Of a DNA stretch of 64,000 nt, positions 23,899 through 46,879 are shown piece after piece (the stretch's first letter is position 1; each line of letters starts with the position of its first letter). The stretch is from assembly GCA_047495785.1 (NCBI GenBank), contig JBLDXI010000020.1, positions 558,001 to 622,000 of the forward strand. The letters are read 5' to 3'. The DNA is from Lepidodermella squamata. Its lineage: Eukaryota; Animalia; Gastrotricha. The position numbers were made by a program, and so were the translations under genes. Under the pieces are notes generated by a model. That model did no database searches and was not told where the DNA came from. It was given only the letters and a program-made list of their open reading frames with translations.

Positions 23899-26781
23899 TC
23901 AGAGAATGGCGAACAGCTTTTTCAATTCTATCATGAGTTCCCAGTCGGCGCGCTGCATATCGTCGCGGAACCATTCTTTGACCGCGTCGATAGATTCGCG
24001 AGTAACTTTCGACACCAACATGTCCTTCTCGTCAAAATGACGGCCGTACATTTTTGGTCCTCCTTCGGTACCAGACACCGGCTCAATTTTTATACAAACT
24101 TCCAGGGGCGATCGAGCGGAAGGCACTTGCTTATGATTTGCTTCAATTGACGTAACGCGGCCCAGTTCTACGAACGGACGATCAGTCGAGGCCGTGCAAA
24201 TTGGGGTGCCCTCGACAAGCCGGCCTGACTCGACACGCACACCCATGACAATAGGATCTCGGGAGTTGAAAATAAACTCTGGAAGAATTTTCAGCTTAAC
24301 CGGGAAAACGGCGACGTTCTTTAACTCCGCTTGTTTCCGCTTCTTATGCTCGTCACGGTACTGACCAAATTTATCGGTCAAATGGTAAATGATGTCGGCT
24401 TCGAAAATTCGCACACCCAAGGAATCGGCGAGTTGGCGAGCGTCGGCTTCGACTCGCACATCAAAGGCTAGGATAACAGCAAACTGAGGGTCACGCTCCA
24501 GCATAGCAGAGCAGCGCATGACATCGCGACGGTGCACCGGTCCGACTGCGATATCAGCATATGGCACTTTCTCCTGACGCAAATAAGTCAACAAAGCCTC
24601 AAGAGCGCCAAGGGTGCTAGCCTGAACCGACACACCGGTATCGGCTTTTTTAAGCTGCAGTTCGCCTAAAGCAGCGTCCAAGTTGCCCTGCATCTCCCGG
24701 CGGCATTCTTCGAGTTCATCCGGGTGACGGAGGATGCCAAGTGGGAGACCGGCCAAAGCGCGCTCAGCCGCGTCTCCTCGAAGCACCAGTCGCAAGGCGG
24801 TAGCACCTTTAACGCGGTGGTGACGTGAATAGCGTGAAGATTTAACACGCAACTCGCGCATAGGCTGAGGGGTGAGCAATTCTCGAATGACGGCTTCCAC
24901 AGCACCGTCAACGGTCGGTACCAATACCGAATTTCCGACTCGCAAACGTCCATTAACAAGTAATACGTCCATGACCGGACCAAGGCCAGGCACGGATTTG
25001 ACCTCCATGATAGAGCATTGAGTCTCGTTCGAAAAGCGAAGGCGTTTCGAAAGTGTTGGTAAAACGCGGCAGAGGCGAACAAGTTGCGACACAATAGTTC
25101 CCAGACCGTCTCCGGTGACAGCAGATGTAGGAACGCACGGTACGTAGTCTTCCGTCAGTTGCTGATCGGTAAGAGTGTTGTACACGCGGGCGTTGAGCGA
25201 TGCCTCAGCTGCCAGCTGCACAATAACTTGATTGCAGCGATCTTTGAACTCCGACTGAACAGCGGCGTTTTGCGAATTGATCGACTTCATGATATCGGTG
25301 CGCGAGCCGGTCGTCTTCCAGCCGTAAAGACGATCCACCTTGTTGAGCGCGATTATGAATGGCACGTTGCGTTTTCGAATGATCTTCAAAGATTCAATAG
25401 TCTGTGGTTCGAGGCCGTGCATCAGATCAACGACCAAAATAGCGACGTCGCACAAGCTAGATCCTCGCATACGGAGGTTAGAGAAAGACTCGTGTCCGGG
25501 TGTGTCAATGAACATAATGCCTGGAAGTTGGCCGAGCTGAGCTTCAGCGGCGCTTTTCACTGCCTGGGCGGATTGGGCGTTGGCGAATCCTAAGCGGAGC
25601 TGTTCACGCAGCTGTTCGCCTGCCATCTCACCGAGGGCTTCGATCGGTACGTTAGTTCCGCCGATTTGCTGAGTGATACCACCAGCTTCACCGGACTGAA
25701 CGTTTGAACGGCGAAGCTTATCCAACAAGCTGGTTTTACCAGTATCGACGTGACCTAGGACGCAAACGATGGCGGCTCGGTAAACAGTTTTATCTGGATC
25801 ACTTTCTAAGCGTTTGGCTTCTGCGCGCTTTCGACGGGCACCGATGCGGTCGGAAGCTGGTATTGCGGCATCTTCTGGGCTCGATAGTCCACTGTCCGTG
25901 TCAGAATCCTTCATCGGGTCATCCAATTCAGCGTCCGCCGCTGCTTTTTGAGCAGCTTGCGCTTGCTGACTAGCAGCGGTCTTTTTATTATTAGCGTCAT
26001 TGTTTTCAGCCTCGGCAGGTTCTTCCTCATCGGTCGAAACGTCCCAGGTTTCCGGAAGCGAGCCCTCGGATTTGTCATCTTTGACTTCCTCCGCTTCGGG
26101 AGATTTGTCGGCCGCTTTCGCATCGGCTTTTGGCTTTTTTCGAAATTCCTTTTTCGGTTTTTCTGTGGGCGCCTGGCCAGCAGCTGTAGCCTGGCCAAGC
26201 ACTTGCTCGCGCTCCTTAAGCATCTGCTCAAAACGTTCTTTGTCGCGTTTTTGTTTTTCAGTTAAGACCAGTCCTTTGGCTTTCTTCTCCGCCAACTTCG
26301 CTTTTTCTTTCTCCTTCTTTAAACGCTTTTTTTCCTCTGCCTCTTGGAGAGCCTTTTCTCGTGCAATCCGCGCTTCTTCCGCTTTTCGCTCCTTTTCTTC
26401 GGCTTCGCGTTGCAGGCGTTCGTTCTCCGCTGCGATGCGAGCCAACTCCTCACGCATGATGCGAGCGCGCATTTCTGCAGCAGTCTCTTTCTTTTCTTTG
26501 CCTTTTTCCTTTTCTTTCTCTTTCGCTTTCTTCTTCTTATCTTTTTTCTTTTTAGCAGCGGCAGACGCGTCGGTACCACCAGCAACATTTTCTTCGCCAC
26601 TGTCGTCACCATCGTCATCATTGACTGCGACGAGTAATAAATCGTGAAAAATAAGTACCTCAAAATTGTAATTTCACGGCATACCATTCAACGCGGCAAT
26701 CTTTGATGTGGCATCGCTGCTCTTCTCGTTGTCAGCCGGAGCCGGAGTCGTTCCGTTTGCGACTGTTGCCTCGCTTGACAT
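23899..26781 (-). CDS. EIF5B: Eukaryotic translation initiation factor 5B (one 60-nt intron, 26625-26684)
   Basis: Charged N-terminus; GHVDTGKT, GEAGGITQQIG, DTPGHESFSNLR.RGSSLCD, NKVD; QASTLGALEAL; FNSRDPIVMGV; MYGRHFDEKD. Confidence 0.97.
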
Positions 26782-26917: not shown

Positions 26918-27724
26918 CTATCCCGATGTTTGCAGTGCTTCTGTTAGAATCGGCCGAACAGCTGCCGAAGTTGCAATCAAACAAGTCAAAACTTGCGAGT
27001 GCTTCTGAGAAAATGCCGCGCAGGCGGCACTACTAAATTTCTCATCGTTCGACCTGTGCCACCACATAGCAGTGAATTGACCCAAATTAGGCATAACGGT
27101 ACCAGCAACTAAAACCGCAGCGTTCGACATTTCAGAGGCGCCTGGATCCACAAGTAACTTCGAAGAATCAGCTGAAATTGAGCAAATGCTTCCAACTACC
27201 AAGTCACGAAGAGGTACCCCTCGAGCCATCAAAGCGACACTTCCAGCATTCACGCATGAGACAATTAACTGCATGAGCGCCAATTCCTCGCACAAATTCG
27301 CCGAATCTAAACTGGATACAGATTCGATCGGCAACTCGACGACAAAATTCAAGTCAAATGCAGTTCCAGCCCATCCAGTAGGTGGTGTCGTGAGAGTTGG
27401 CAAGAGAGCTGTATGAATCGATTTTTCAATAATTTGTTTCTGCCACCATTTGGGGGTTTCATTTTCTCGAGCAGTAAGTTTGATACACAACGGGGAATTC
27501 GATGTTGAGGTTACTTGGGGCCGGGGCCCATCGACTTCGCAATAAACTTTAAGAGAGCCGCCGCATTCAGATCCGAGACTGCGCTCAACGACACATGACG
27601 CTTGGGATGAAAACAGCTGCTGAGAATCATCATCAATGTTTTGTCTAAAGGCTATCACTGTAATAGGACTGTGTTGGTACTCGCTCCTCCCATCATAGCG
27701 CTTCCCCGAGGGTACAGGCTTCAT
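26918..27724 (-). CDS. EXOSC6: Exosome complex RNase PH-like subunit, most like MTR3/EXOSC6 (intronless, divergent)
   Basis: KVYCEVDGPR, CVNAGSVALMARGVPLRDLVVG, LLVDP, MPNLGQF, PILTEAL. Confidence 0.72.
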   Translation of the reverse strand: MKPVPSGKRYDGRSEYQHSPITVIAFRQNIDDDSQQLFSSQASCVVERSLGSECGGSLKVYCEVDGPRPQVTSTSNSPLCIKLTARENETPKWWQKQIIEKSIHTALLPTLTTPPTGWAGTAFDLNFVVELPIESVSSLDSANLCEELALMQLIVSCVNAGSVALMARGVPLRDLVVGSICSISADSSKLLVDPGASEMSNAAVLVAGTVMPNLGQFTAMWWHRSNDEKFSSAACAAFSQKHSQVLTCLIATSAAVRPILTEALQTSG

Positions 27725-29256: not shown

Positions 29257-29906
29257 ATGGCTGAATCTTCAGCTGATATCAAAGTCATGCCAACGGTGCC
29301 CCTCCAAATTTCGCCATATGAACAAGAAGCATCCTCTGATTCCCAGGTAATTGTTTGAATTCGATAATGAGCACTGAGATAATGACTTGGCATCTTTTGC
29401 AGAACATCCAGGACGTGGATGACATTGCTGTGGTCAGAATGGAGGAACAGAAACTTCAAGCCAAGTATCCAAACTTGGCAAAGACCAGTGTCTCATCGAG
29501 CTTTCTCCAAAAACAGCTTAGCAAAGGGGTAAGTTGAATAATTATGTCCCACCTTCTACAGATGTTTGATGATGCTTTATTACAGCTTGTCTTCGATTCT
29601 GGGGATTATAATGCAGCGAAATCCAAAGTTCAAACAAAGAAGCCTTTGAAGCCAGAAGAGCAGTTGCAGCTGTCTATGATTAACAGTTTACCTGCTGATT
29701 CTCCGGCGCCCCATCATCAGCTCCCTCCCCCTCAACCGTCAGGTAGTGGCGCCAGTTCTCCGGTTGTCTATTCTCGTTCGCAATCGCTCACTCCTGCTTT
29801 GATGACATCGTCAACCCTTGGGCTAGGAACCTCAGGAGTTCAACCAAGTGGTCGCCCGGTTCGCAAACCTTCTGTTACGTCGCAAAGCCGGCTTGCCGCT
29901 TCATAA
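29257..29906 (+). CDS. ENSA: Alpha-endosulfine / ARPP19 family protein, 3 exons
   Basis: EEQKLQAKYPNL..FLQKQLSKG|LVFDSGDYNAAK (Greatwall site) and RKPS (PKA site); introns 29347-29402 and 29529-29585. Confidence 0.9.
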
Positions 29907-31137: not shown

Positions 31138-31805
31138 TCAACAGCATTTGCCTTTAAAAACTCCGGTAACTGCTAACGATACCAAAATCACAAATATTAG
31201 ACTGCAAACGAGTAGAAAGCCTGTTATTGTATATTCGCACGTTGTATCGCAGTTGGGAATGGCAAGCCAGTCGAAAGCAAGCAGTTTATTTTCGAGGTGC
31301 AACGACTGATTGTTGAATTTGATCACTTTATCGGATGGAGTACTGCTATTTTCAGGCGATAAAGACGTGATGATCGAGTTAACGGCGTGCGAGTTTTCTG
31401 GCAAGCAGCATACGTAAGGATCGGCGCAACCTTCAGTTAATATTCGCTCTTCGTAGGTTTGCGGGCAAACAGCAGTACAAATGCCCCTGGCAAAATGGTA
31501 CAACGCAATCATTACTATAAATGCCGAGGAGTGGTGTTATTTTACGCAGCAAAAAACACCGCTATTCATGGTTAATGTATATTATTCTTACCCTGGTGCA
31601 ATAGCCTGGCAAGCTGATGAATTCTGGCGGTGTGAAGCATTTGCTGTAGTAAAACAAGAGCATAGAAGAAAAGGTTACTATCAGAAAGTGTTGTTTTTGT
31701 CAAAGTTCAAATACCTGTACATGAAACGCCGGCTTGCAGTACAAGCAGTATGACCCTGAAGAGTTTTTCAAGCCGCGTAGTGGCGCATAAAAAACGTCTT
31801 ATCAT
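31138..31805 (-). CDS. Single-pass membrane protein with beta-defensin-like 6-Cys domain (paralog A), 3 exons
   Basis: Signal-like LFRVILLVLQAGVSC; spliced CQAIAPGGICTAVCPQTYEERILTEGCADPYVCCLPEN; S/T-rich linker; TM ITGFLLVCSLIFVILVSLAVTGVF; ends KGKCC. Confidence 0.75.
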
Positions 31806-32513
31806 TTTTCCGTCAACAAACCACATAGGTAATGATATGCAGTTTGGCTATGTCGTATAAAGTTCTTAATAATAATTTTAGTAAATGAAGGTATCAGCAT
31901 AGTAAATATTTCATTACAGAAAAGAGACGTGGAATGAAGCCGTAATAGAAGTAATAGGAAGTTTGCGGATTTGCGAATGAATACGCGTAAGGTAGCACAC
32001 GGATATCTGAAAAGAGAAAACTCGCTTTAGAATTAATTTCACTTGAAAAGCGCGTACCTATGCGCGTGTTTCCAATCCGGCGTCTGCCTATTACTTTCTC
32101 ATACATATACACTCTGCGTTGTGGCGAATGGTTCAGTGCCCAAACAGCTTTATTTTCAAATCTACGACCCTCGTCGTATCAACATATACTGGAGAACCGC
32201 AACTTTTCTCGCTTGTACACAAATTGGCGTGCAATTATTTATAGCTCCTAAAATGTAGAGCGCGATTATCGCTTACCTACCTCTGAAATTCACCGTCAAA
32301 GTGCTCGCTTGCATCGTACATCATCGCATTATAATTATACCAAACACAAATTTCATGTGATTGAGACGCAGAGTTTACCATGCCGTTGTTACATATATTT
32401 CAATTTTCATCATCATCTCGATTGTTTTGGTGACATTCGAGGTCATATACACGATGTAATTGAAGCTAATTGGCAAGTTTATTTTAGCAAACATAACCCG
32501 TGGTAATATTTAA

Positions 32514-34076
32514 TCAGCAACACCGCGTTAAATGCCCAGACATGGCCAGGCCTATGACAACCAATACGGTGATAGCGGCTGTGCCCATCAAAGTTAATAT
32601 TATTGCTTTGCAAAGAAACGAGCAGTCTTTTATGACAACGCCCTCTTCCTCTTCATAGGGCGAGTTAGCTGCCGTAATGAGCTGATGTGTCTCGGTCACT
32701 GTTCCATTCCCGCTGGAAGCCAACGATGTTGCTTTCCCATCAACGCGGCTGACGCTTTCTGTTGTTACGCTGACTTGTTTGCTTGTCACATCGTCATTGC
32801 GCACCTTATAAGCCCACGTCTGCTCGGTTTCATACACTGTCGGCATTACCGTACTTCCTCCGCTTTTTCCGCGCGTATCCGCTGTGCTAAAAGCTGAGTA
32901 GCGTTCGGGCGTGTTAAAAACTAATTAAGACACGTAGCATCAAGCTTCAAGATTTTTTTGCGCACTTTTTATATTTACCGTTCCAAACATCCTCCGGATC
33001 AACCCTGGTTGTCAGCTTCGTCGCCGCTTCAATTTCGGTGGCTATTTTCGGATAATTCACTTTTATAATTAAAATATTCAGCATTATCGATTTTTGTGTC
33101 ACCTTGCGAATGCCATGTTTCCCTCGACCAAAACGGCGTTGTCCATAGAGATGCTGGCTTAATTTCAAAGGTTGTGGTTTTAGTTTCGCCATGAGGCGTC
33201 GCGGCAATGACGGCATTTTCGGGCAAACAGCAGACGTAAGGGCTTGTACAGCCACCGAGCAGTTCATGTTCTTGATAGCCCACTGAGCAAACTGTAGTGC
33301 AAAATCCACCCGGTGCTAACGCAAGGCAGGCTGCTGAATCGTGACCTGGGATAGCATCAGCAAGCGCAGCAGCGACAACAGCAGCGCGGCCTAAAAATAA
33401 TATATCAAAAATATTGTGAATTTATTCTTCCACCACCACTGCGCGTGTGCGTTAGAGTTGTTTTCCTATCGTAATTGCCATTAGGCGAAAAGATGAAAGA
33501 GGAGAAGCAGTGTCCCTGGCCTTATCGATTTATACTTCCAGCTCTTCCGCAATATACCGCTACTTTGTATTTATAAATATTTCATTATGCCCCTGCATTC
33601 TAGCAATAATAGCTCATTATTAACTGTTTATTGTATTGTGTCGGGTATTAAGGAAGGCAACGTGACTGCCTATATAGGCCGAATATTACAAATTCAAAGA
33701 TGGTACCTTCCTCGAGATGTTGTTTGGCGGCATCGGGCGCGCCTGAAACCGCTGTGATGTTGATGATGAAAATCCAATAAATGCTTCGTAAGAAAAATAA
33801 AAACAGGCGAGCGGAATCAGCTGAATTGGCGCTGTTTCTTTTGCCGCTGTAATGGCTCTGATGAAAAGGGTAATGACGGTGCCGCAATACTATTGTATTG
33901 GCTGCTTCATGATGATGCTGATGCCGATGCGAAGATGGCGCGGATGAGTAGGCGGCCGATGAATATGCACAGCCGCCTGCTTCGTGCATAAGAAACTGGT
34001 AAAAATAGGACGGAATAATTGATGACTTTCCGGCATCCAACAGCCGCTCGATTTTGCATCTCGGCGATAGCGACAT
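32514..34076 (-). CDS. Single-pass membrane protein with beta-defensin-like 6-Cys domain (paralog B), at least 4 exons; start at 34076 or 33989
   Basis: Hydrophobic LFLFFLRSIYWIFIINITAVSG; CLALAPGGFCTTVCSVGYQEHELLGGCTSPYVCCLPEN; phase-compatible introns 33391-33706, 33060-33102 and ~32894-32978; Thr-rich stalk; TM; ends LTRCC. Confidence 0.75.
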
Positions 34077-34429: not shown

Positions 34430-37400
34430 TCAAAAGTTTTGAGAAGTCGACACAGGTTTCGTGTTTCCGGATGTCGTGTACTTGAGGACGAGTTGGCGAA
34501 TTTTATCTCGCCTGTTGTCCGCTATCGCATCAGTTGTGCGCGCAAAAAAGTCATGCAATTTGGCACGTTCATCGTTAATTGTTGTCAATTTCAGAGGCGG
34601 AAAATAGCCGACCGGTTGTCGCGTCTGCGAAGGCGTTCCGCCAAATTCGACTTTAATCTTGTCCGTAGTTATGCGGTTCGGCAACTTGCAAATCTCGCGG
34701 TTAGTTATCGTCGGCGCTAATTTGTTGAAGGATTTGACTTGATCGTTCATTACACGATTAGCCTCTTTCAGCTGTTCATTCGACTCTCGTATAGCCCCCG
34801 CAATTTTGTTAGCCAAATCGATTTTCGAATCAAGCTCAGACTTATCAAGCTGATTATTTTTTGAGTGAAATATTGGCTCAACCGCTATAATCCGTTTCGC
34901 TCGGGCTTTTTCATTCTTGCTGCTATCATTTGAGCCCATAGTAGGGCCTTGAGCTACTATGTAGTTCATCGAGGGTAGCAAAGTGCCGTTTCCAAGCGTT
35001 TTAACTTCCTCCGGGGTTTCGATACGACCGTCCAGAGGGACGAACTTCGTGAGTATTTCATTCGGCGTGCTGTAGCACAGAACTACGCATAATTTGAAAA
35101 CGATGTCTAGCCGTTTGCAGTTCTCCTGAGAGTTACGAAATATAACAGAATTTCGAACTGAAAAAAACCCGATCAGGTATAAAAAGCTTCGAAGCCTAGG
35201 ATTGTCAAACAGCTTCGACGCCGTTTTATCGCTGAGCTCAACCGAAAAACTCGTATGTTTGACGAGGGCGAAAAAATTGACGATATCAAATGCTTGATCG
35301 ACCGTTGCATTGTTTAACACATCGACAGCAGCGTCACATAACACAGAATCGCAGAAGAAAAGCTCGCCCAGGACATCGAGAAGCATGATAACTTTATCCA
35401 GAGTTCGTTCGGAATTCTGCAAAGGAGACACCAATAGCTTGAGTTCGTTGTCGAGATTCACAATGTGATAACCAAGCCATTTAAGAAATAACTGAAGCTC
35501 GACAGTTTGCGGCAAGCGGCTCATTTCGTTAAGGTCAGGGGGTGACAGGATAATTAATCTAACCCGTTCGAGTTCTTCGAGGGAAGGGCAATTTTTCGCG
35601 AGCCAGCAGACCAGATGCTTGATTTTTTCAAACCACTTCAAGTTCGCGGCAGTGGAGCTATCTTTACAACTTTCCCCGAAAACCTCAGTTTCCGTTACTT
35701 TATCATGAGCAGTTTTGACGGTTTTCATAGTTTTTTGCAACTCCTGGTCCAGCATGTTGTGGGCAAGTCTCTTCAGATCTAGCAATGAGTTAACTCCAAT
35801 AACAGAGCAAAAACCGCTCGTCATGTCATCATTAGCCAGTGCTGCCGTATCAACAACACCATTTAGCGTTCGTTTCGAGTACAGCTTCGAGAACCCGTCT
35901 AACAGCTGCTTATCAGTTAATCCGAGCTTGGGAAATACAACGGCATGAGCGCCTGCGAGTAGGAAAGCGGCAGGCAAAACGTAAACACTGTTGCCGATAT
36001 GGTTTCGCGATAATTCCAAGGACTCAATTAGTTCTAGCGCCGAGTGGCATGCACTAATGGAAACTACTTTTGTTCGGCTCATCGATAAACAAGCGATTTC
36101 ACTCGGCGTTAGCTTCGCACCGGAGACGTTATTGGGCGAGAAACTATTTGTGTTTGAAACCAACACATCCTCTGGGAATGAAAAGGCAACCACTCCATCA
36201 ATATATGAAACAAATGTCGCGAGATGAACCAATGCAAAACCATTGCTCCCATGCATGAACGCGGTTTTGTCGCATTGCTCACCCAGGTAGAAGTAAGGAG
36301 AGTGAAGGTACTTAGCAAGCTGAATCACTTCCTTCTGACTTTCTTTCAACACGTGAGGATGCCATTCAGTTCCTTGAACAGCGATTTTCGCCCCGATAGC
36401 GAAAGCGGGATTACCGAAAAGTACAGCTTTATTTGGCACAAATTTATCGTTCGCCGAAGCGAGAGCATACATCGATGATGTGCAAACATCTGCACCTGAA
36501 GAGCTCTTTGTCGTCAACGTACTAATCGTATGAGCCCCACATGCAAGCTTAGCACTTTGAGGTCGCAGCAGAGGTCGCGATCCTCGCTCATCCAACGAGC
36601 GTCTAAGCTTGGCAAGCTCTGCTCTTTCTGTTTCCTCCTTGTTACTTCGCTGAGCTTCAAAAAACAGGTACATTCCGCCCAATTTGGACGTGAGTAGAGT
36701 TTTCCGATGCTCTTCCTCGTGAGCAAGGGTTGCCAATTGATTTTCAAGGCTCAACTCGAGAAAGACTAGAGAGGGTAATGAGAAAACGTTTCTCGGAGAG
36801 GGAGGCGGATCGGGTAGCATAGTTCGAACCCATCTATTTACCAAATCATCAAAGTAACCCGCCATCGCCAGTAACTGCCCATCGGGGAAAATGAAAACTT
36901 TATCAGTATTTCTCCATAACGATAACGAAAGCCTTGAGAATAGCAAATGGGCAATCTCTGATATTAAGTCGTCATCAGAGGAGTCGTTCTGAGACGAAGT
37001 AAGTGTCGCGAGTGGAATTGATGACTGGAACTTGGAAGGCAGAAGGCGCCGCTCAGACGTGTAGCTATTAGCCTGCTTATTGTGGATGAATTTCCGCACC
37101 AATTCAGTTAGAGACTTGCCGGTTTTCGACGACGTGGTGGGGATTTTTATGAAGCTATTGTAGCCACGACCAGGGCGAAAAGCCCATATGCACAAGGCTC
37201 TCGTTGAATCTTTTCCAATGTCGGCAAAATACAGGAATAATGAACTATCATCGTATTTTTCAATGACGCTTTCAATCCAGTTGTAGCTCACAGGTCGTGA
37301 TAATTTGTTCAAAAATCGACGATTCGGAACTTTGGCAAGAAGGATAGTGTTGCGAGCCCATTCGATAGTCTCAATTGCAAATTTCGGATCGCTTAAGGCA

Positions 37401-38733
37401 CACTCCAGTTCCAAGTAGATCCTGCAACTTCTATTTACAAGGCTCAGTAAAGTTTCAGGAACTTTTTGGAAAGACTCAACAGTCGAGTATATCTTCTGGA
37501 TGTTGTTAGATAGTATTTGCTGAGTACACTTCAGACCATGCTCCATTTGCGTAAAATTTGGGTGAGAATGGTATATATTCATGGAAAGTTCCCATATATC
37601 CATAACATCGACCTCTTCCTCTGCATTTTTTGCTGCTACAGACAATTTGGCCGCACTTTTCAAATACTGACAGCATTCAGACCTTGCGATGTCGTCGTTA
37701 AGATCGTTGAGATGAAACAAACAAGTGGCCATGAGGAAGTAAATTTTCGCCATGGTTACTTTATTGGAATGAACATTTTTCTCACTTCTTGCGATATGCT
37801 CGGCTTCTTTGAGAATACTCAGTGCTTCTCCATACTTTACCTCAAGCATTCGAACCTCCGCTGTGAGATAATGATGTGTCAAGTAGAATTAAAGAAACGG
37901 GAAAAGAATTACCTGCTGATATTTTTGTAGCGACATATTGCGCCACATCCACGTCCTTGGATACGCATGCTATAGCAACCGCTTGGTCGGCAAACACAGC
38001 GGCGCTAGTTGAGGTTTTGATTTTCAAAGCTATGTGGGATTTCGTTAAGAAGGCAGCGATGCGCTCTTTAGCATGAATATGAGTGTCTCTCGTTAGCAAC
38101 AAGACTCTGTCGCACAGCTTTTCCAGCTCTCCAAGGTGTACAGCATTGCTTTTCGAGTAGCAATTAATCAGGGTCAGCAATATGCTCACTTCATCTTGAA
38201 TTCTTCATTTTAACATACTTCACGATGAAATTTAAATTAAATACCTGATTTTGAGCGAAAATCGAACCCTGTCAGCTTTTGGTGAACAAGGCGACATAAA
38301 TTGGTAGCGCACTCCACCTCTTCCAACTTGATGTAAGAAATTATCAAAATTTTGGCAGCTTCGAAAAACTCCTAATTAATAAGGGTTATATAGTATTCTG
38401 CATCATGCAAGTAATTATAACATGTCGTACCTCGTCAGCTGAAGCTCCGTCCCATATGAATTTCTCAAGCAACGGTATCACGTGTTTGTGAAGATTTAAT
38501 GCGAAGTAAATAAAAGCTAACTGACGTGTGCATTTTTCGTTGACAAAGTGAGCCTCCGAAGCATCCCAGTCAGAAAAGCTTGGCTTGGCTTGAAGGACTT
38601 CCTTGATTATTTCGAGATATCGACACGCCTTTATATTGTTTCCTTCGGCAATAAGCTTATCAGCCGCCACTTTCAACGTTTTCAAATCTTGAAAGCTCTC
38701 GATTGCAGATATATTATGCAATGCTTCAGCCAT
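34430..38733 (-). CDS. TTC28-like TPR + CHAT (caspase/separase-fold) domain protein, 4 exons
   Basis: Helical TPR-like N-terminus; CHAT motifs IFPDGQL, AVLFGNP, LKESQKEV..LA, LVHLATF, LTPSEI, VVSISAC, LPAAFLLAGAHAVV. Confidence 0.8.
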
Positions 38734-44054: not shown

Positions 44055-46879
44055 CTATAAGGGCGCCGACTCGCAGTTGACAGGTCGACCCACGTCGTTC
44101 GATAAGGACACCTCAGCTTCCATCTCGTCGTTCTCTATGATCAACTCGTCCTCCGCTGACAGCGGCGAAAACTGGAACTGGTTTTGAAGCCGTTTGAAAC
44201 AGCTTCGACTGCAAGCTGAAGTGCGTGAATTTGAACTAGAGTTGTTCCGTACACCATTTAGCCGTTCATTCCCAGTGAATCGCTGCAAGATCTTAGTGAC
44301 GTTGCGCCGAATGGCGGCAACGTGTTTAACGCAACAGAAGTAATAGATCACGATAGAAACGATGATGAAAACCACGACGAATATTGCCGACATGGCGACG
44401 ACTAACAGCATCTGAACTCCCGAGGGAGCTTTCGTCGATGCTAGCAGGTCCTCAGGAGATGAGCACAATTCGAGGAAATGAATGTACTGATAAGCCCTGC
44501 CGTCGTCCGTGTGACATTCGATTTCCTCCGGTGCAACAAGTCGCGATCCCAAGTGATCGAAACCATCTCGAACATCTTCGTCACATTCGCAACTGAACGA
44601 GTTATTTGCTAGGTTTATCGAATCATTCGCGGTTAGCATCGGCAAATAAGCCATTCTGAACGGGAAATGAATGATGTGATTCGAATCTAGCCGGATATAT
44701 TCAGCCTTGGATAGATAGCGATAAACGCAATCGTCAATAGTGTCAATCAAGTTGTTTTGTAGATACAACTCGCGGACATCTCGAAGATAACTTTTGCAGC
44801 TGAGCGATTTGATGAAATTGCCCTCGAGGTGAACGAGTGATGTGTTCAGTGGCATCATCAACGGCATTTCATGTAAACAATCACATTCGGCACAGTCAGC
44901 TTTCCACTGGCCCGCTTTTTTGTCCAACGTGCAAAAACACTCGGCAGCACATCGAGCTGTGTCATCTGAACATTTCAACTGCCTCCTTTTGTCTTCGAGG
45001 GCCAGTTCGCGTAGTTGCACGTAAGAATCCGGCTTTTTGTTCCTTAGGGCTGTTGTAGCACCCGGAATCCGGCACTTCAAGTCTAAAAGTGCCTTTGACT
45101 GGTTGGCGACAACGTCGATTCTGTGTTCAGTTGAAACGTCATAGCTTTCTTGTAAATATTTCACTCGGCTCAGGAGGTCGCATGAGCAATCAAGAGGGTT
45201 CCCGGACAAGTTGTAGAACGAAACAACGCCCATGTGATGGAACGGCTTGACAACGAAGAGAGACATCAGTTGATGCGAGTCCAGCGCCCTAATCTTGTTG
45301 TCAGATATATCGACGGCGATGGATCGCTTTATCTCATTCGAAGCCCAGGTCGGTAAGAACGATTCGTCCCAAATTGTTCGGTCAATCAACGAAACTATGT
45401 CATCCATACCCGTATTAATTTGTCGCAGATTTGAAATCGAATTCTAAAATTTAAATAAAATTTACTCGAATATTCCGAAGTAACTCTTTTTAGCTTACGT
45501 TTCGAGCTATAACCGATATGTATGCGTTGAACTTGGTTGGAAGCACGCTGAGAGATTTCAATAGGTTGGAGCTCAAAAGAACAGTGATGATGTGTGAATG
45601 AGGTTCAATGCTGGGAATAACTTTCAGTCGATTGTTATTGAGATTCAAATACTGGAGCATTGGAAGGCGAGAAAAGTTCAACGCTCGAGAGGAAATCGTC
45701 ACGAGGTTATTGAAGCTCAGATCGAGCTTTGTGAGCACCGTCGAATTCGCGAATACCCGATCAGGGATCTTGGCTATTTCATTATGCGACAAGTCGAGTT
45801 CGCTGAGAGCCATGTGTGCACCGATAGGAAAATCGGGCAGTTCTGCGAGTTCATTGTAAGACAGATCGAGCACCGCTAAAGCGCCGACGTGAAAGAAGGT
45901 CGTATTTCGAATTTCCGCTATATTGTTATGGCTCAAATTTAATGCATGCATCTGGCCGTAAAAATCCTCCAAACTTCTAAGGCTGCAATTCGACAAATCA
46001 ACCACTGTTTTCATGTGATTGAACCGCAGATATTGCGGGGCAATATCAAGTCTATTATTGGAGAAATCGACGGAAATCGCATTTGGAAATGACGAATTCG
46101 GATCGGTTTTAATGTGAGCGATCTGATTGAACGACAAATTGATGTTGGAGAGTGATTGATTGACATTTCGATAGGTCAAGTCGAAAGAGCTCAGCGATGT
46201 ATTTTGGATAATTAACGTTTGAATACCACCAAATCGAATGAAATCGTAGATCGTGGTCGTTAGGCTCGAAATACTTGAATTTAACAGCACCAATTCCTTT
46301 AGCGAGTCAAAGCGATCCAAATTTGTAGTTGTATCTAACAGCTGTTTAAATACGAGCAATTAAAGTCATTAATAAAATTTGCTGAAAACACTGCCTTACC
46401 TCTTGGGAAATATTAATGAGCACAAGGCAAGTCGCCGAATGGCTAATTCGCTTCAGTGTCAATGTTAACACATGCAAATTAGGGCAGGAATGCGCATGTT
46501 GCCCGTCTGCATTGACTCCGACTGCAAAATTTCGAAATTCATTGAGCAAATGTAGCGGCAGCGTGTTTGGCAGCACACTTGTACACTCGGAGACGTTAAT
46601 GTAAGCGTAACGATTCGGCAAATTTCGAATATCGGCTGGTGTCGACACAATTTTCACATCTCCTGACCCGGACTGGTGGCAATTAATCGTCGGACTGAGG
46701 GAAAACATGCAGATCCACGCCTGGCCGGCCGACGAGCCGCAGTAATTCGCGACACCAGTGTACGTTTCCTGAGCAGCCGCCGCACATGTAAACAGGACAG
46801 CGAATAAACACAGGTTGACATCACGTGACCATCGCCGAGAATTCGGTCGAAATCGATCGCAGGTGCCAATAGTGAGCAT
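44055..46879 (-). CDS. Leucine-rich-repeat type I membrane protein with Toll-like ectodomain and no TIR domain, 3 exons
   Basis: Signal peptide, multiple LxxLDLSxNxL repeats, LRRCT (NPLDCSCDL), LRRNT (CAAECFC..C), further LRRs, second LRRCT (NSFSCEC), TM, ~90-aa tail. Confidence 0.85.

Follow-up and report, generated by a model that had tools for sequence, protein, structure and literature searches.

Known peptides with the defensin fold are secreted, most of them are cationic, and they act as effectors, toxins or inhibitors. Trans-defensins space their cysteines within the range C-x(4-8)-C-x(3-5)-C-x(9-13)-C-x(4-7)-CC. They are built of six cysteines and three antiparallel strands, with the pairing C1-C5, C2-C4 and C3-C6 in beta-defensins and big defensins; the genes of these two families have in common an intron in phase 1 that lies directly 5' of the Cys-rich region, some big defensins are anionic, and Gastrotricha were found devoid of big defensin genes (PMC7203481). 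A literature search for natural membrane-anchored proteins with a defensin fold found none, and the only membrane-tethered defensin in the literature searched is an engineered, glycosylphosphatidylinositol (GPI)-linked honeybee defensin in Drosophila (bioRxiv 10.1101/2025.07.17.665347). Here we describe a pair of paralogs, gene A (31826-31138) and gene B (about 34076-32514), delimited by three-frame reading and splice-site contexts on the minus strand of a 64,000-nucleotide window from the gastrotrich Lepidodermella squamata (assembly GCA_047495785.1, contig JBLDXI010000020.1, positions 558,001 to 622,000). With a probability of roughly one half, these genes encode single-pass type I membrane glycoproteins in which a defensin-like acidic head serves as a tethered binding module.

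Both genes carry a cysteine module, C-x8-C-x3-C-x12-C-x5-CC, marked by the sequences S-[SA]-A-C, PGG-x-CT-x-VC and PYVCCLPEN. A preliminary description of this DNA had recognised a tandem pair with a common Cys motif, a C-x3-C pair, a helix and a -CC tail, and all these elements were read on the minus strand at the positions listed in Table 1; its third loop of 11-12 residues, however, is 12 residues long in gene A and in gene B. The spacing falls within the trans-defensin range. The Cys modules of A (exon 3) and B (Cys-domain exon) matched each other in BLASTP (E 8e-12, 59% identity over 32 residues), the C-x3-C/helix/CC modules aligned Cys on Cys (E 3e-4), and a whole-genome six-frame search returned paralog matches at E 3.4e-7 and 2.0e-5.

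Identity between the two Cys modules was 0.64, 0.81 and 0.40 at the first, second and third codon positions, respectively; nonsynonymous divergence (dN) was 0.30, and synonymous divergence (dS) was too saturated to compute. Saturated third positions in a protein that has been kept point to an old duplication held under protein-level constraint. A and B thus look like genuine genes that go back to an ancient duplication and are apparently confined to this lineage. That they are non-functional, as duplicates in decay or as open frames wrongly joined, is highly improbable in view of this constraint, and of intact frames, canonical phase-matched splice sites, a poly(A) signal and coding-like codon usage, although no orthologue was found in word-index, 1.84-billion-representative and JGI metagenome searches and the first exon of gene B is doubtful.

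The introns of gene A, 71 and 105 nt long, have canonical GT..AG ends and matching phases, the donor of exon 2 (CCAGG/GTAAGA; the slash marks the exon border) being phase 2. Exon 1 reaches a mean Kyte-Doolittle hydropathy of 2.64 in its best 10-residue window. Cys2-Cys6, stalk, helix and tail of gene A form a single uninterrupted exon, in which the in-frame codon signal was 0.146 by a codon-usage score. The link between Cys2-Cys6 and the membrane helix in gene A is therefore independent of splicing. The architecture had been described as visible only after splicing, which does not hold for this link; likewise, a failure of transcripts to join the Cys domain to the membrane exon, once proposed as grounds for rejection, cannot apply to gene A. 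Its intron-split module was examined exon by exon, and for both genes the searches and folds used unjoined exons.

In gene B, the Cys-domain exon (acceptor TTTTTAG/GC, phase 1; Cys1 at 33328, Cys6 at 33227) has two alternative phase-1 donors, at 33103 (CAAG/GTGACA) or 33061 (AAAA/GTGAAT). Either one splices in frame onto the last exon, and all phases are compatible. The last exons of both genes were clearly in frame by the codon-usage score, a rough measure trained on two neighbouring genes, computed per block and pooled. One AATAAA is located 31 nt downstream of the gene B stop (32483) and a second 125 nt past the stop of the upstream open reading frame (ORF) with a CHAT domain (34305); therefore A, B and the CHAT ORF look like separate transcription units.

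As had been claimed, the module is acidic and not cationic. The core of gene B has an isoelectric point of 4.5, a net charge of about -3 and zero Lys/Arg; that of gene A has five acidic residues and one Arg. Because the module is almost without positive charge, it would be unlikely to kill microbes by membrane disruption.

The Cys module was folded for gene B only (55 residues, one exon), employing AlphaFold without an alignment. The best model, with a predicted local distance difference test (pLDDT) score of 68.4, consisted of a helix at residues 6-12 and three strands. A Foldseek search with this model gave 43 matches. Most of them, and every one of the top 12, were defensins (beta-defensins from birds, humans and crocodiles, the big defensin of oyster, alpha-defensins) or sea-anemone peptides of a defensin-like kind. 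An unfiltered structure search of 48,161 PDB representative chains gave 15 at Z of at least 2, 14 of them with the defensin fold, including gallin (3.7), oyster big defensin (3.5), hBD4 (3.4) and helianthamide (3.2); among the matches there was no clip-domain structure and no tick carboxypeptidase inhibitor. As these Z values are near the ceiling for a 40-residue knot, the evidence is the specificity of the match list and not the scores. A sequence search of the PDB produced a sole match, mouse beta-defensin 8 (E 1.1), with Cys2-Cys6 aligned and with GG-x-Cys2, Gly before Cys4 and SP-aromatic-x-CC lining up; a CCLP match obtained with an A + B profile against PDB sequences was dismissed as chance. 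Directly 5' of the Cys module, an intron in phase 1 interrupts each gene; 11 residues separate it from Cys1 in A and 21 in B, and in gene A its borders are ACAG/GT ... CAG/CA. Its position is weakly suggestive of common descent with beta- and big defensins, with which it is compatible. Judging from the model, a beta-defensin/big-defensin (trans-defensin) fold is plausible but unproven.

Several points weigh against A and B being surface proteins with a defensin-type head. The other four models of the gene B module had pLDDT values of 43-52, and the structural scores were individually non-significant, with all Foldseek E-values > 1 and Z < 4; the AlphaFold model may echo the cysteine spacing alone. 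Whole-genome scans with PF00711, PF14862 and PF12032 gave no match at the locus even at E 10 (PF12032 had one weak match elsewhere in the genome). Extracellular modules are often preceded by an intron in phase 1, which makes the argument from the intron a weak one. In the candidate first exon of gene B, the coding-like codon signal was confined to the 3' 90 nt, and gene B may possess a long pre-sequence, a second membrane segment near the N-terminus or a further upstream exon that escaped notice. Finally, the tail of gene A fits a retrieval pattern, KxKxx, that would hold the protein in the endoplasmic reticulum (ER) or Golgi, off the cell surface.

The points on the fold would also suit a new small disulfide-rich domain with a different fold or cysteine pairing, whose defensin-like spacing arose by chance. 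Only one of five models was confident and all fold scores were weak; neither profile nor sequence searches linked the module to any defensin family, and the language-model search was empty. Against such convergence stand the high specificity of the structural matches (14/15 among 48,161 chains), the motifs aligned with mouse beta-defensin 8, and an intron whose phase and position match those of beta- and big-defensin genes. We regard convergence as somewhat unlikely, though a serious possibility. The defensin-like fold claimed in the preliminary description, to be sought by structure prediction and Foldseek, thus stood in that the model resembles beta- and big defensins and little else, but it comes from one model of pLDDT 68 with no profile match. 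That the head is a true beta- or big-defensin homologue surviving in Gastrotricha, borne by an acidic, acylated, possibly dimerised membrane ligand or recognition protein, is a tentative proposal: homology to trans-defensins together with a tethered-ligand role has about one chance in four.

Signals of the KxKxx/KKxx type, with Lys at -3 and at -4 or -5, act in ER retrieval when they stand at the cytosolic C-terminus of a type I membrane protein. Gene A ends in KGKCC, a tail that fits the KxKxx pattern for COPI retrieval of such proteins, as would be expected of residents of the ER or Golgi lumen that are retrieved by their cytosolic tail. The gene B tail, ..LTRCC, does not fit, being without two lysines; what the paralogues share is basic-Cys-Cys and not KxKxx, and acylated terminal cysteines would probably mask a retrieval signal. 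An intracellular residence is very unlikely on this balance, and a surface location of both proteins is what we infer. Taken as a whole, the preliminary description was borne out in architecture, paralogy, acidity and lack of relatives; its defensin fold found weak support, and the ER-retrieval fit of KGKCC had been overlooked.

The stalk is 47 residues long in A and, depending on the donor, 136 or 150 residues in B, in agreement with the different lengths originally noted. When the last exon of gene B was folded alone, residues 1-95 were unstructured (pLDDT < 50), and a single long helix ran from the first juxtamembrane Cys through the tail; the stalk is thus predicted to be disordered. N-glycosylation sequons are present in both genes. 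With a Ser/Thr content of only 17-24%, the stalk is more fairly called a flexible, probably glycosylated linker than a mucin. The best 19-mer of the membrane helix has a mean Kyte-Doolittle hydropathy of 2.81 in A and 2.55 in B, and the helix is followed by the predicted very short tail ending in CC, 5-6 residues in length (KGKCC in A, HLTRCC in B). At the outer edge of the membrane, a single helical turn separates the two juxtamembrane cysteines.

Taken together, these features give each protein an acidic six-Cys module at its tip, a flexible stalk (47 residues in A, about 140 in B), the C-x3-C cysteines where the chain meets the outer face of the membrane, a single helix and a cytosolic tail of 5-6 residues ending in basic-Cys-Cys. 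Rather than a microbicide, the head would more likely be a tethered binding module (ligand, co-receptor or recognition unit), whose distance from the cell surface differs between A and B. Like the cysteines of disulfide-linked receptor chains, those of C-x3-C could link two chains into dimers, possibly A with B. Cytosolic juxtamembrane cysteines in type I proteins are commonly palmitoylated, and the terminal Cys-Cys of A and B is probably S-acylated.

A layout of this kind could also belong to membrane-bound precursors, in which a protease cuts the stalk and a soluble defensin-like peptide is shed for signalling or defence, as for fractalkine (CX3CL1) and pro-TNF. The layout is the same as that of CX3CL1, which occurs in membrane and shed forms (PMC11311528); the disordered stalk of gene B would be accessible, and retention of the second intron of gene B would give a soluble form, since the Cys-domain exon would then reach its own stop at 33031-33029. 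Neither a dibasic nor any other recognisable cleavage site is conserved between the stalks of A and B, however, and the acidic head argues against a classical antimicrobial product. Shedding of this kind appears unlikely, and we retain a permanently tethered head as the preferred reading.

The genome searched (121 Mb, 151 contigs, roughly 44% G+C) held no further copies of the family beyond A and B, either in protein searches with each module or with a back-translated PYVCCLP pattern; a DNA pattern of the Cys spacing was uninformative over the genome, its matches being swamped by CTG/TTG microsatellites. No Pfam domain was found in either gene, and the module had no Pfam match even at E 10. 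A word-index protein search with the last exon of gene A found no relative, and HMMER with the gene B module found no genuine relative among 1.84 billion protein representatives. The sole HMMER match, P0001, is a 438-residue protein with ~10 copies of a 33-residue unit containing ECCLPES; the other cysteines are absent from it, and it was rejected as spurious. It looks like a translated tandem DNA repeat. In the JGI metagenomes, back-translated motifs including YVCCLPEN gave 198 pattern matches, none of which was confirmed, and a language-model search of the ESM Atlas gave no usable match. The protein collections appear to be without this genome, as eIF5B found no self-match, and to hold one relative only, with 72% eIF5B identity. 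The absence of relatives therefore means none detectable in public indexed data and not a family unique to one species. Within that scope, the family is apparently undescribed, as had been suggested, for no sequence relatives were found in Pfam, the PDB, the 1.84 billion representatives, the word index or the JGI metagenomes; nor did any already characterised family turn up in the databases searched.

Table 1. Exons and parts of genes A and B (window coordinates; a slash marks the exon border)
Feature	Position	Strand	Content
Gene A exon 1	31826 (or 31805)-31715	-	Start codon and signal-peptide-like segment; phase-1 donor ACAG/GTATTT
Gene A exon 2	31643-31592	-	Sequons NAS and NSS, Cys1 (31611-31609), ends ..SSAC QAIA PG; acceptor TTTTACTACAG
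Gene A exon 3	31486-31138	-	G-ICTAVC.., Cys2-Cys6 (to 31405), PYVCCLPEN, 47-residue stalk, C-x3-C, helix, KGKCC, stop
Gene A exon 3, C-terminal parts		-	C-x3-C 31251-31237 (within NCDTTC); 24-residue membrane helix about 31227-31156; stop 31140-31138
Gene B exon 1 (candidate, uncertain)	34076-33707	-	ATG 34076 or 33989, His-rich stretch, then hydrophobic segment; phase-1 donor GAAG/GTACCA
Gene B Cys-domain exon	33390 to 33103 or 33061	-	Begins after TTATTTTTAG; Ala/Val-rich lead-in, six-Cys module, start of stalk
Gene B last exon	32920-32514	-	After CTTAATTAG; remaining stalk, C-x3-C 32624-32610 (within KDCSFLCK), helix, HLTRCC, stop 32516-32514
Gene B membrane helix	about 32606-32535	-	24 residues

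The candidate first exon of gene B is phase-compatible and has the best donor available, but its 5' part shows only a weak coding signal, so the start of gene B proposed earlier is uncertain. It places 64-93 His-rich residues ahead of the hydrophobic stretch. A shorter alternative was sought, and none had a donor better than that at 33707. An out-of-frame reading through the exon junction with the same donor and acceptor (33733-33316, minus strand) opens with an ATG in another frame, a short charged start and a Leu-rich signal-like segment; it was rejected, as it meets a stop before Cys1. Such a reading may represent a short ORF that overlaps, or may merely reflect the composition of the GC-rich GCN/CTG stretch.

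An uninterrupted ORF of 1150 residues (34430-37882, minus strand) with a CHAT (caspase-like) domain (Pfam E 2.4e-10) lies immediately upstream of gene B. On the other side, two adjacent ORFs at 29355-29906 (plus strand) are probably a two-exon ENSA-like gene convergent with gene A; the second contains FDSGDY, which we take to be typical of endosulfine/ARPP-19 (the Greatwall kinase site). A 268-residue ORF at 26918-27724 (minus strand) had no relative at E <= 1e-10 in the word-index search, though 1141 candidates shared words with it. eIF5B occupies a single open frame of 857 codons (23899-26472, minus strand); its closest public relative, 72% identical, lies on ENA contigs of 13.5 and 11.7 kb, and the remaining matches are 45-56% identical, the named ones being nearly all from arthropods. 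Farther away, a 450-residue ORF (44055-45407, minus strand) matches leucine-rich repeats weakly, and LRR_8, at E 2.4e-4, falls short of the Pfam cut-off.

GPI-anchored lynx1 is a tethered toxin fold, and helianthamide (against amylase) and the tick carboxypeptidase inhibitor are soluble inhibitors with a defensin fold. By analogy, the head of A and B might bind to an enzyme or ion channel, in its own membrane or in one next to it, and block or tune it. One of the 15 structural matches is helianthamide (Z 3.2), and an acidic, non-lytic head would suit a binding role. The neighbouring genes, encoding the CHAT-domain protein and the endosulfine-like protein, point to no target, however, and no sequence similarity to known inhibitors was found in the PDB or the 1.84 billion representatives. 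A role as tethered inhibitor or modulator is quite unlikely, even though defensin-fold peptides acting as enzyme inhibitors or channel ligands are documented (PMC6835510, PMC6099957).

If a tethered, defensin-like head is confirmed, A and B would represent a natural acidic, permanently membrane-anchored version of the fold that serves for binding at the surface. If the head is in addition a true homologue of the trans-defensins, it would be the first of them found naturally tethered to a membrane, and a cell-surface ligand or recognition unit rather than an antimicrobial peptide. The patchy distribution of trans-defensin-like proteins would be extended to an early-branching spiralian phylum, which bears on the question of a single old origin of beta- and big defensins. 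With two members in one genome and a fold that is only predicted, the claim is modest for now.

Compared with beta-defensins (PF00711; also the crotamine type), A and B have the same C..C..C..C..CC order, GG-x-Cys2, Gly before Cys4, a predicted helix with three strands and the phase-1 intron, whereas they lack a profile match, are acidic instead of cationic, and stand on a stalk and membrane helix instead of being secreted. The loops of beta-defensins are about 6/4/9/6 residues long, those of the A/B module 8/3/12/5. The big-defensin C-terminal domain (PF14862) has, like the A/B module, a three-residue second loop and a long third loop; it is likewise from invertebrates, with the same Cys order and phase-1 intron, and oyster big defensin was the second-best structural match. 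A and B differ from big defensins in lacking a profile match, a hydrophobic globular domain at the N-terminus and a dibasic site for processing, and in being membrane anchored. Arthropod clip domains (PF12032) also have six cysteines ending in CC, with beta-defensin pairing, and share a VCC-P type motif, but they gave no profile match at the locus and no structure among the fold matches, and no serine-protease domain follows the A/B module. The lynx1/Ly6 prototoxins are alike in concept only, as small disulfide folds of toxin type that are tethered to their own membrane and modulate receptors; they have a three-finger fold and a GPI anchor, with no homology to A and B.

In layout, the closest counterparts are CX3CL1 and CXCL16, whose small binding head, closed by disulfides, is carried on a long and flexible stalk containing Ser/Thr, followed by one membrane helix and a short tail (PMC11311528). 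A and B have this fractalkine-type order of head, stalk, single helix and tail; the chemokine fold was absent from the structure matches, there is no homology, and the chemokines have a longer cytoplasmic tail and no terminal CC. DEFB126 of primate sperm combines a beta-defensin core with a long glycosylated tail that forms a negatively charged cell-surface coat (PMC4744710); in contrast to A and B, it is secreted and then adsorbed to the cell, lacks a membrane helix and has a core whose sequence is not acidic. Being acidic, anchored and without a profile match, the head of A and B is therefore assigned neither to the beta- or big defensins nor to the clip domains; on the predicted fold, it is plausibly a defensin-like (trans-defensin-type) module in a new architecture.

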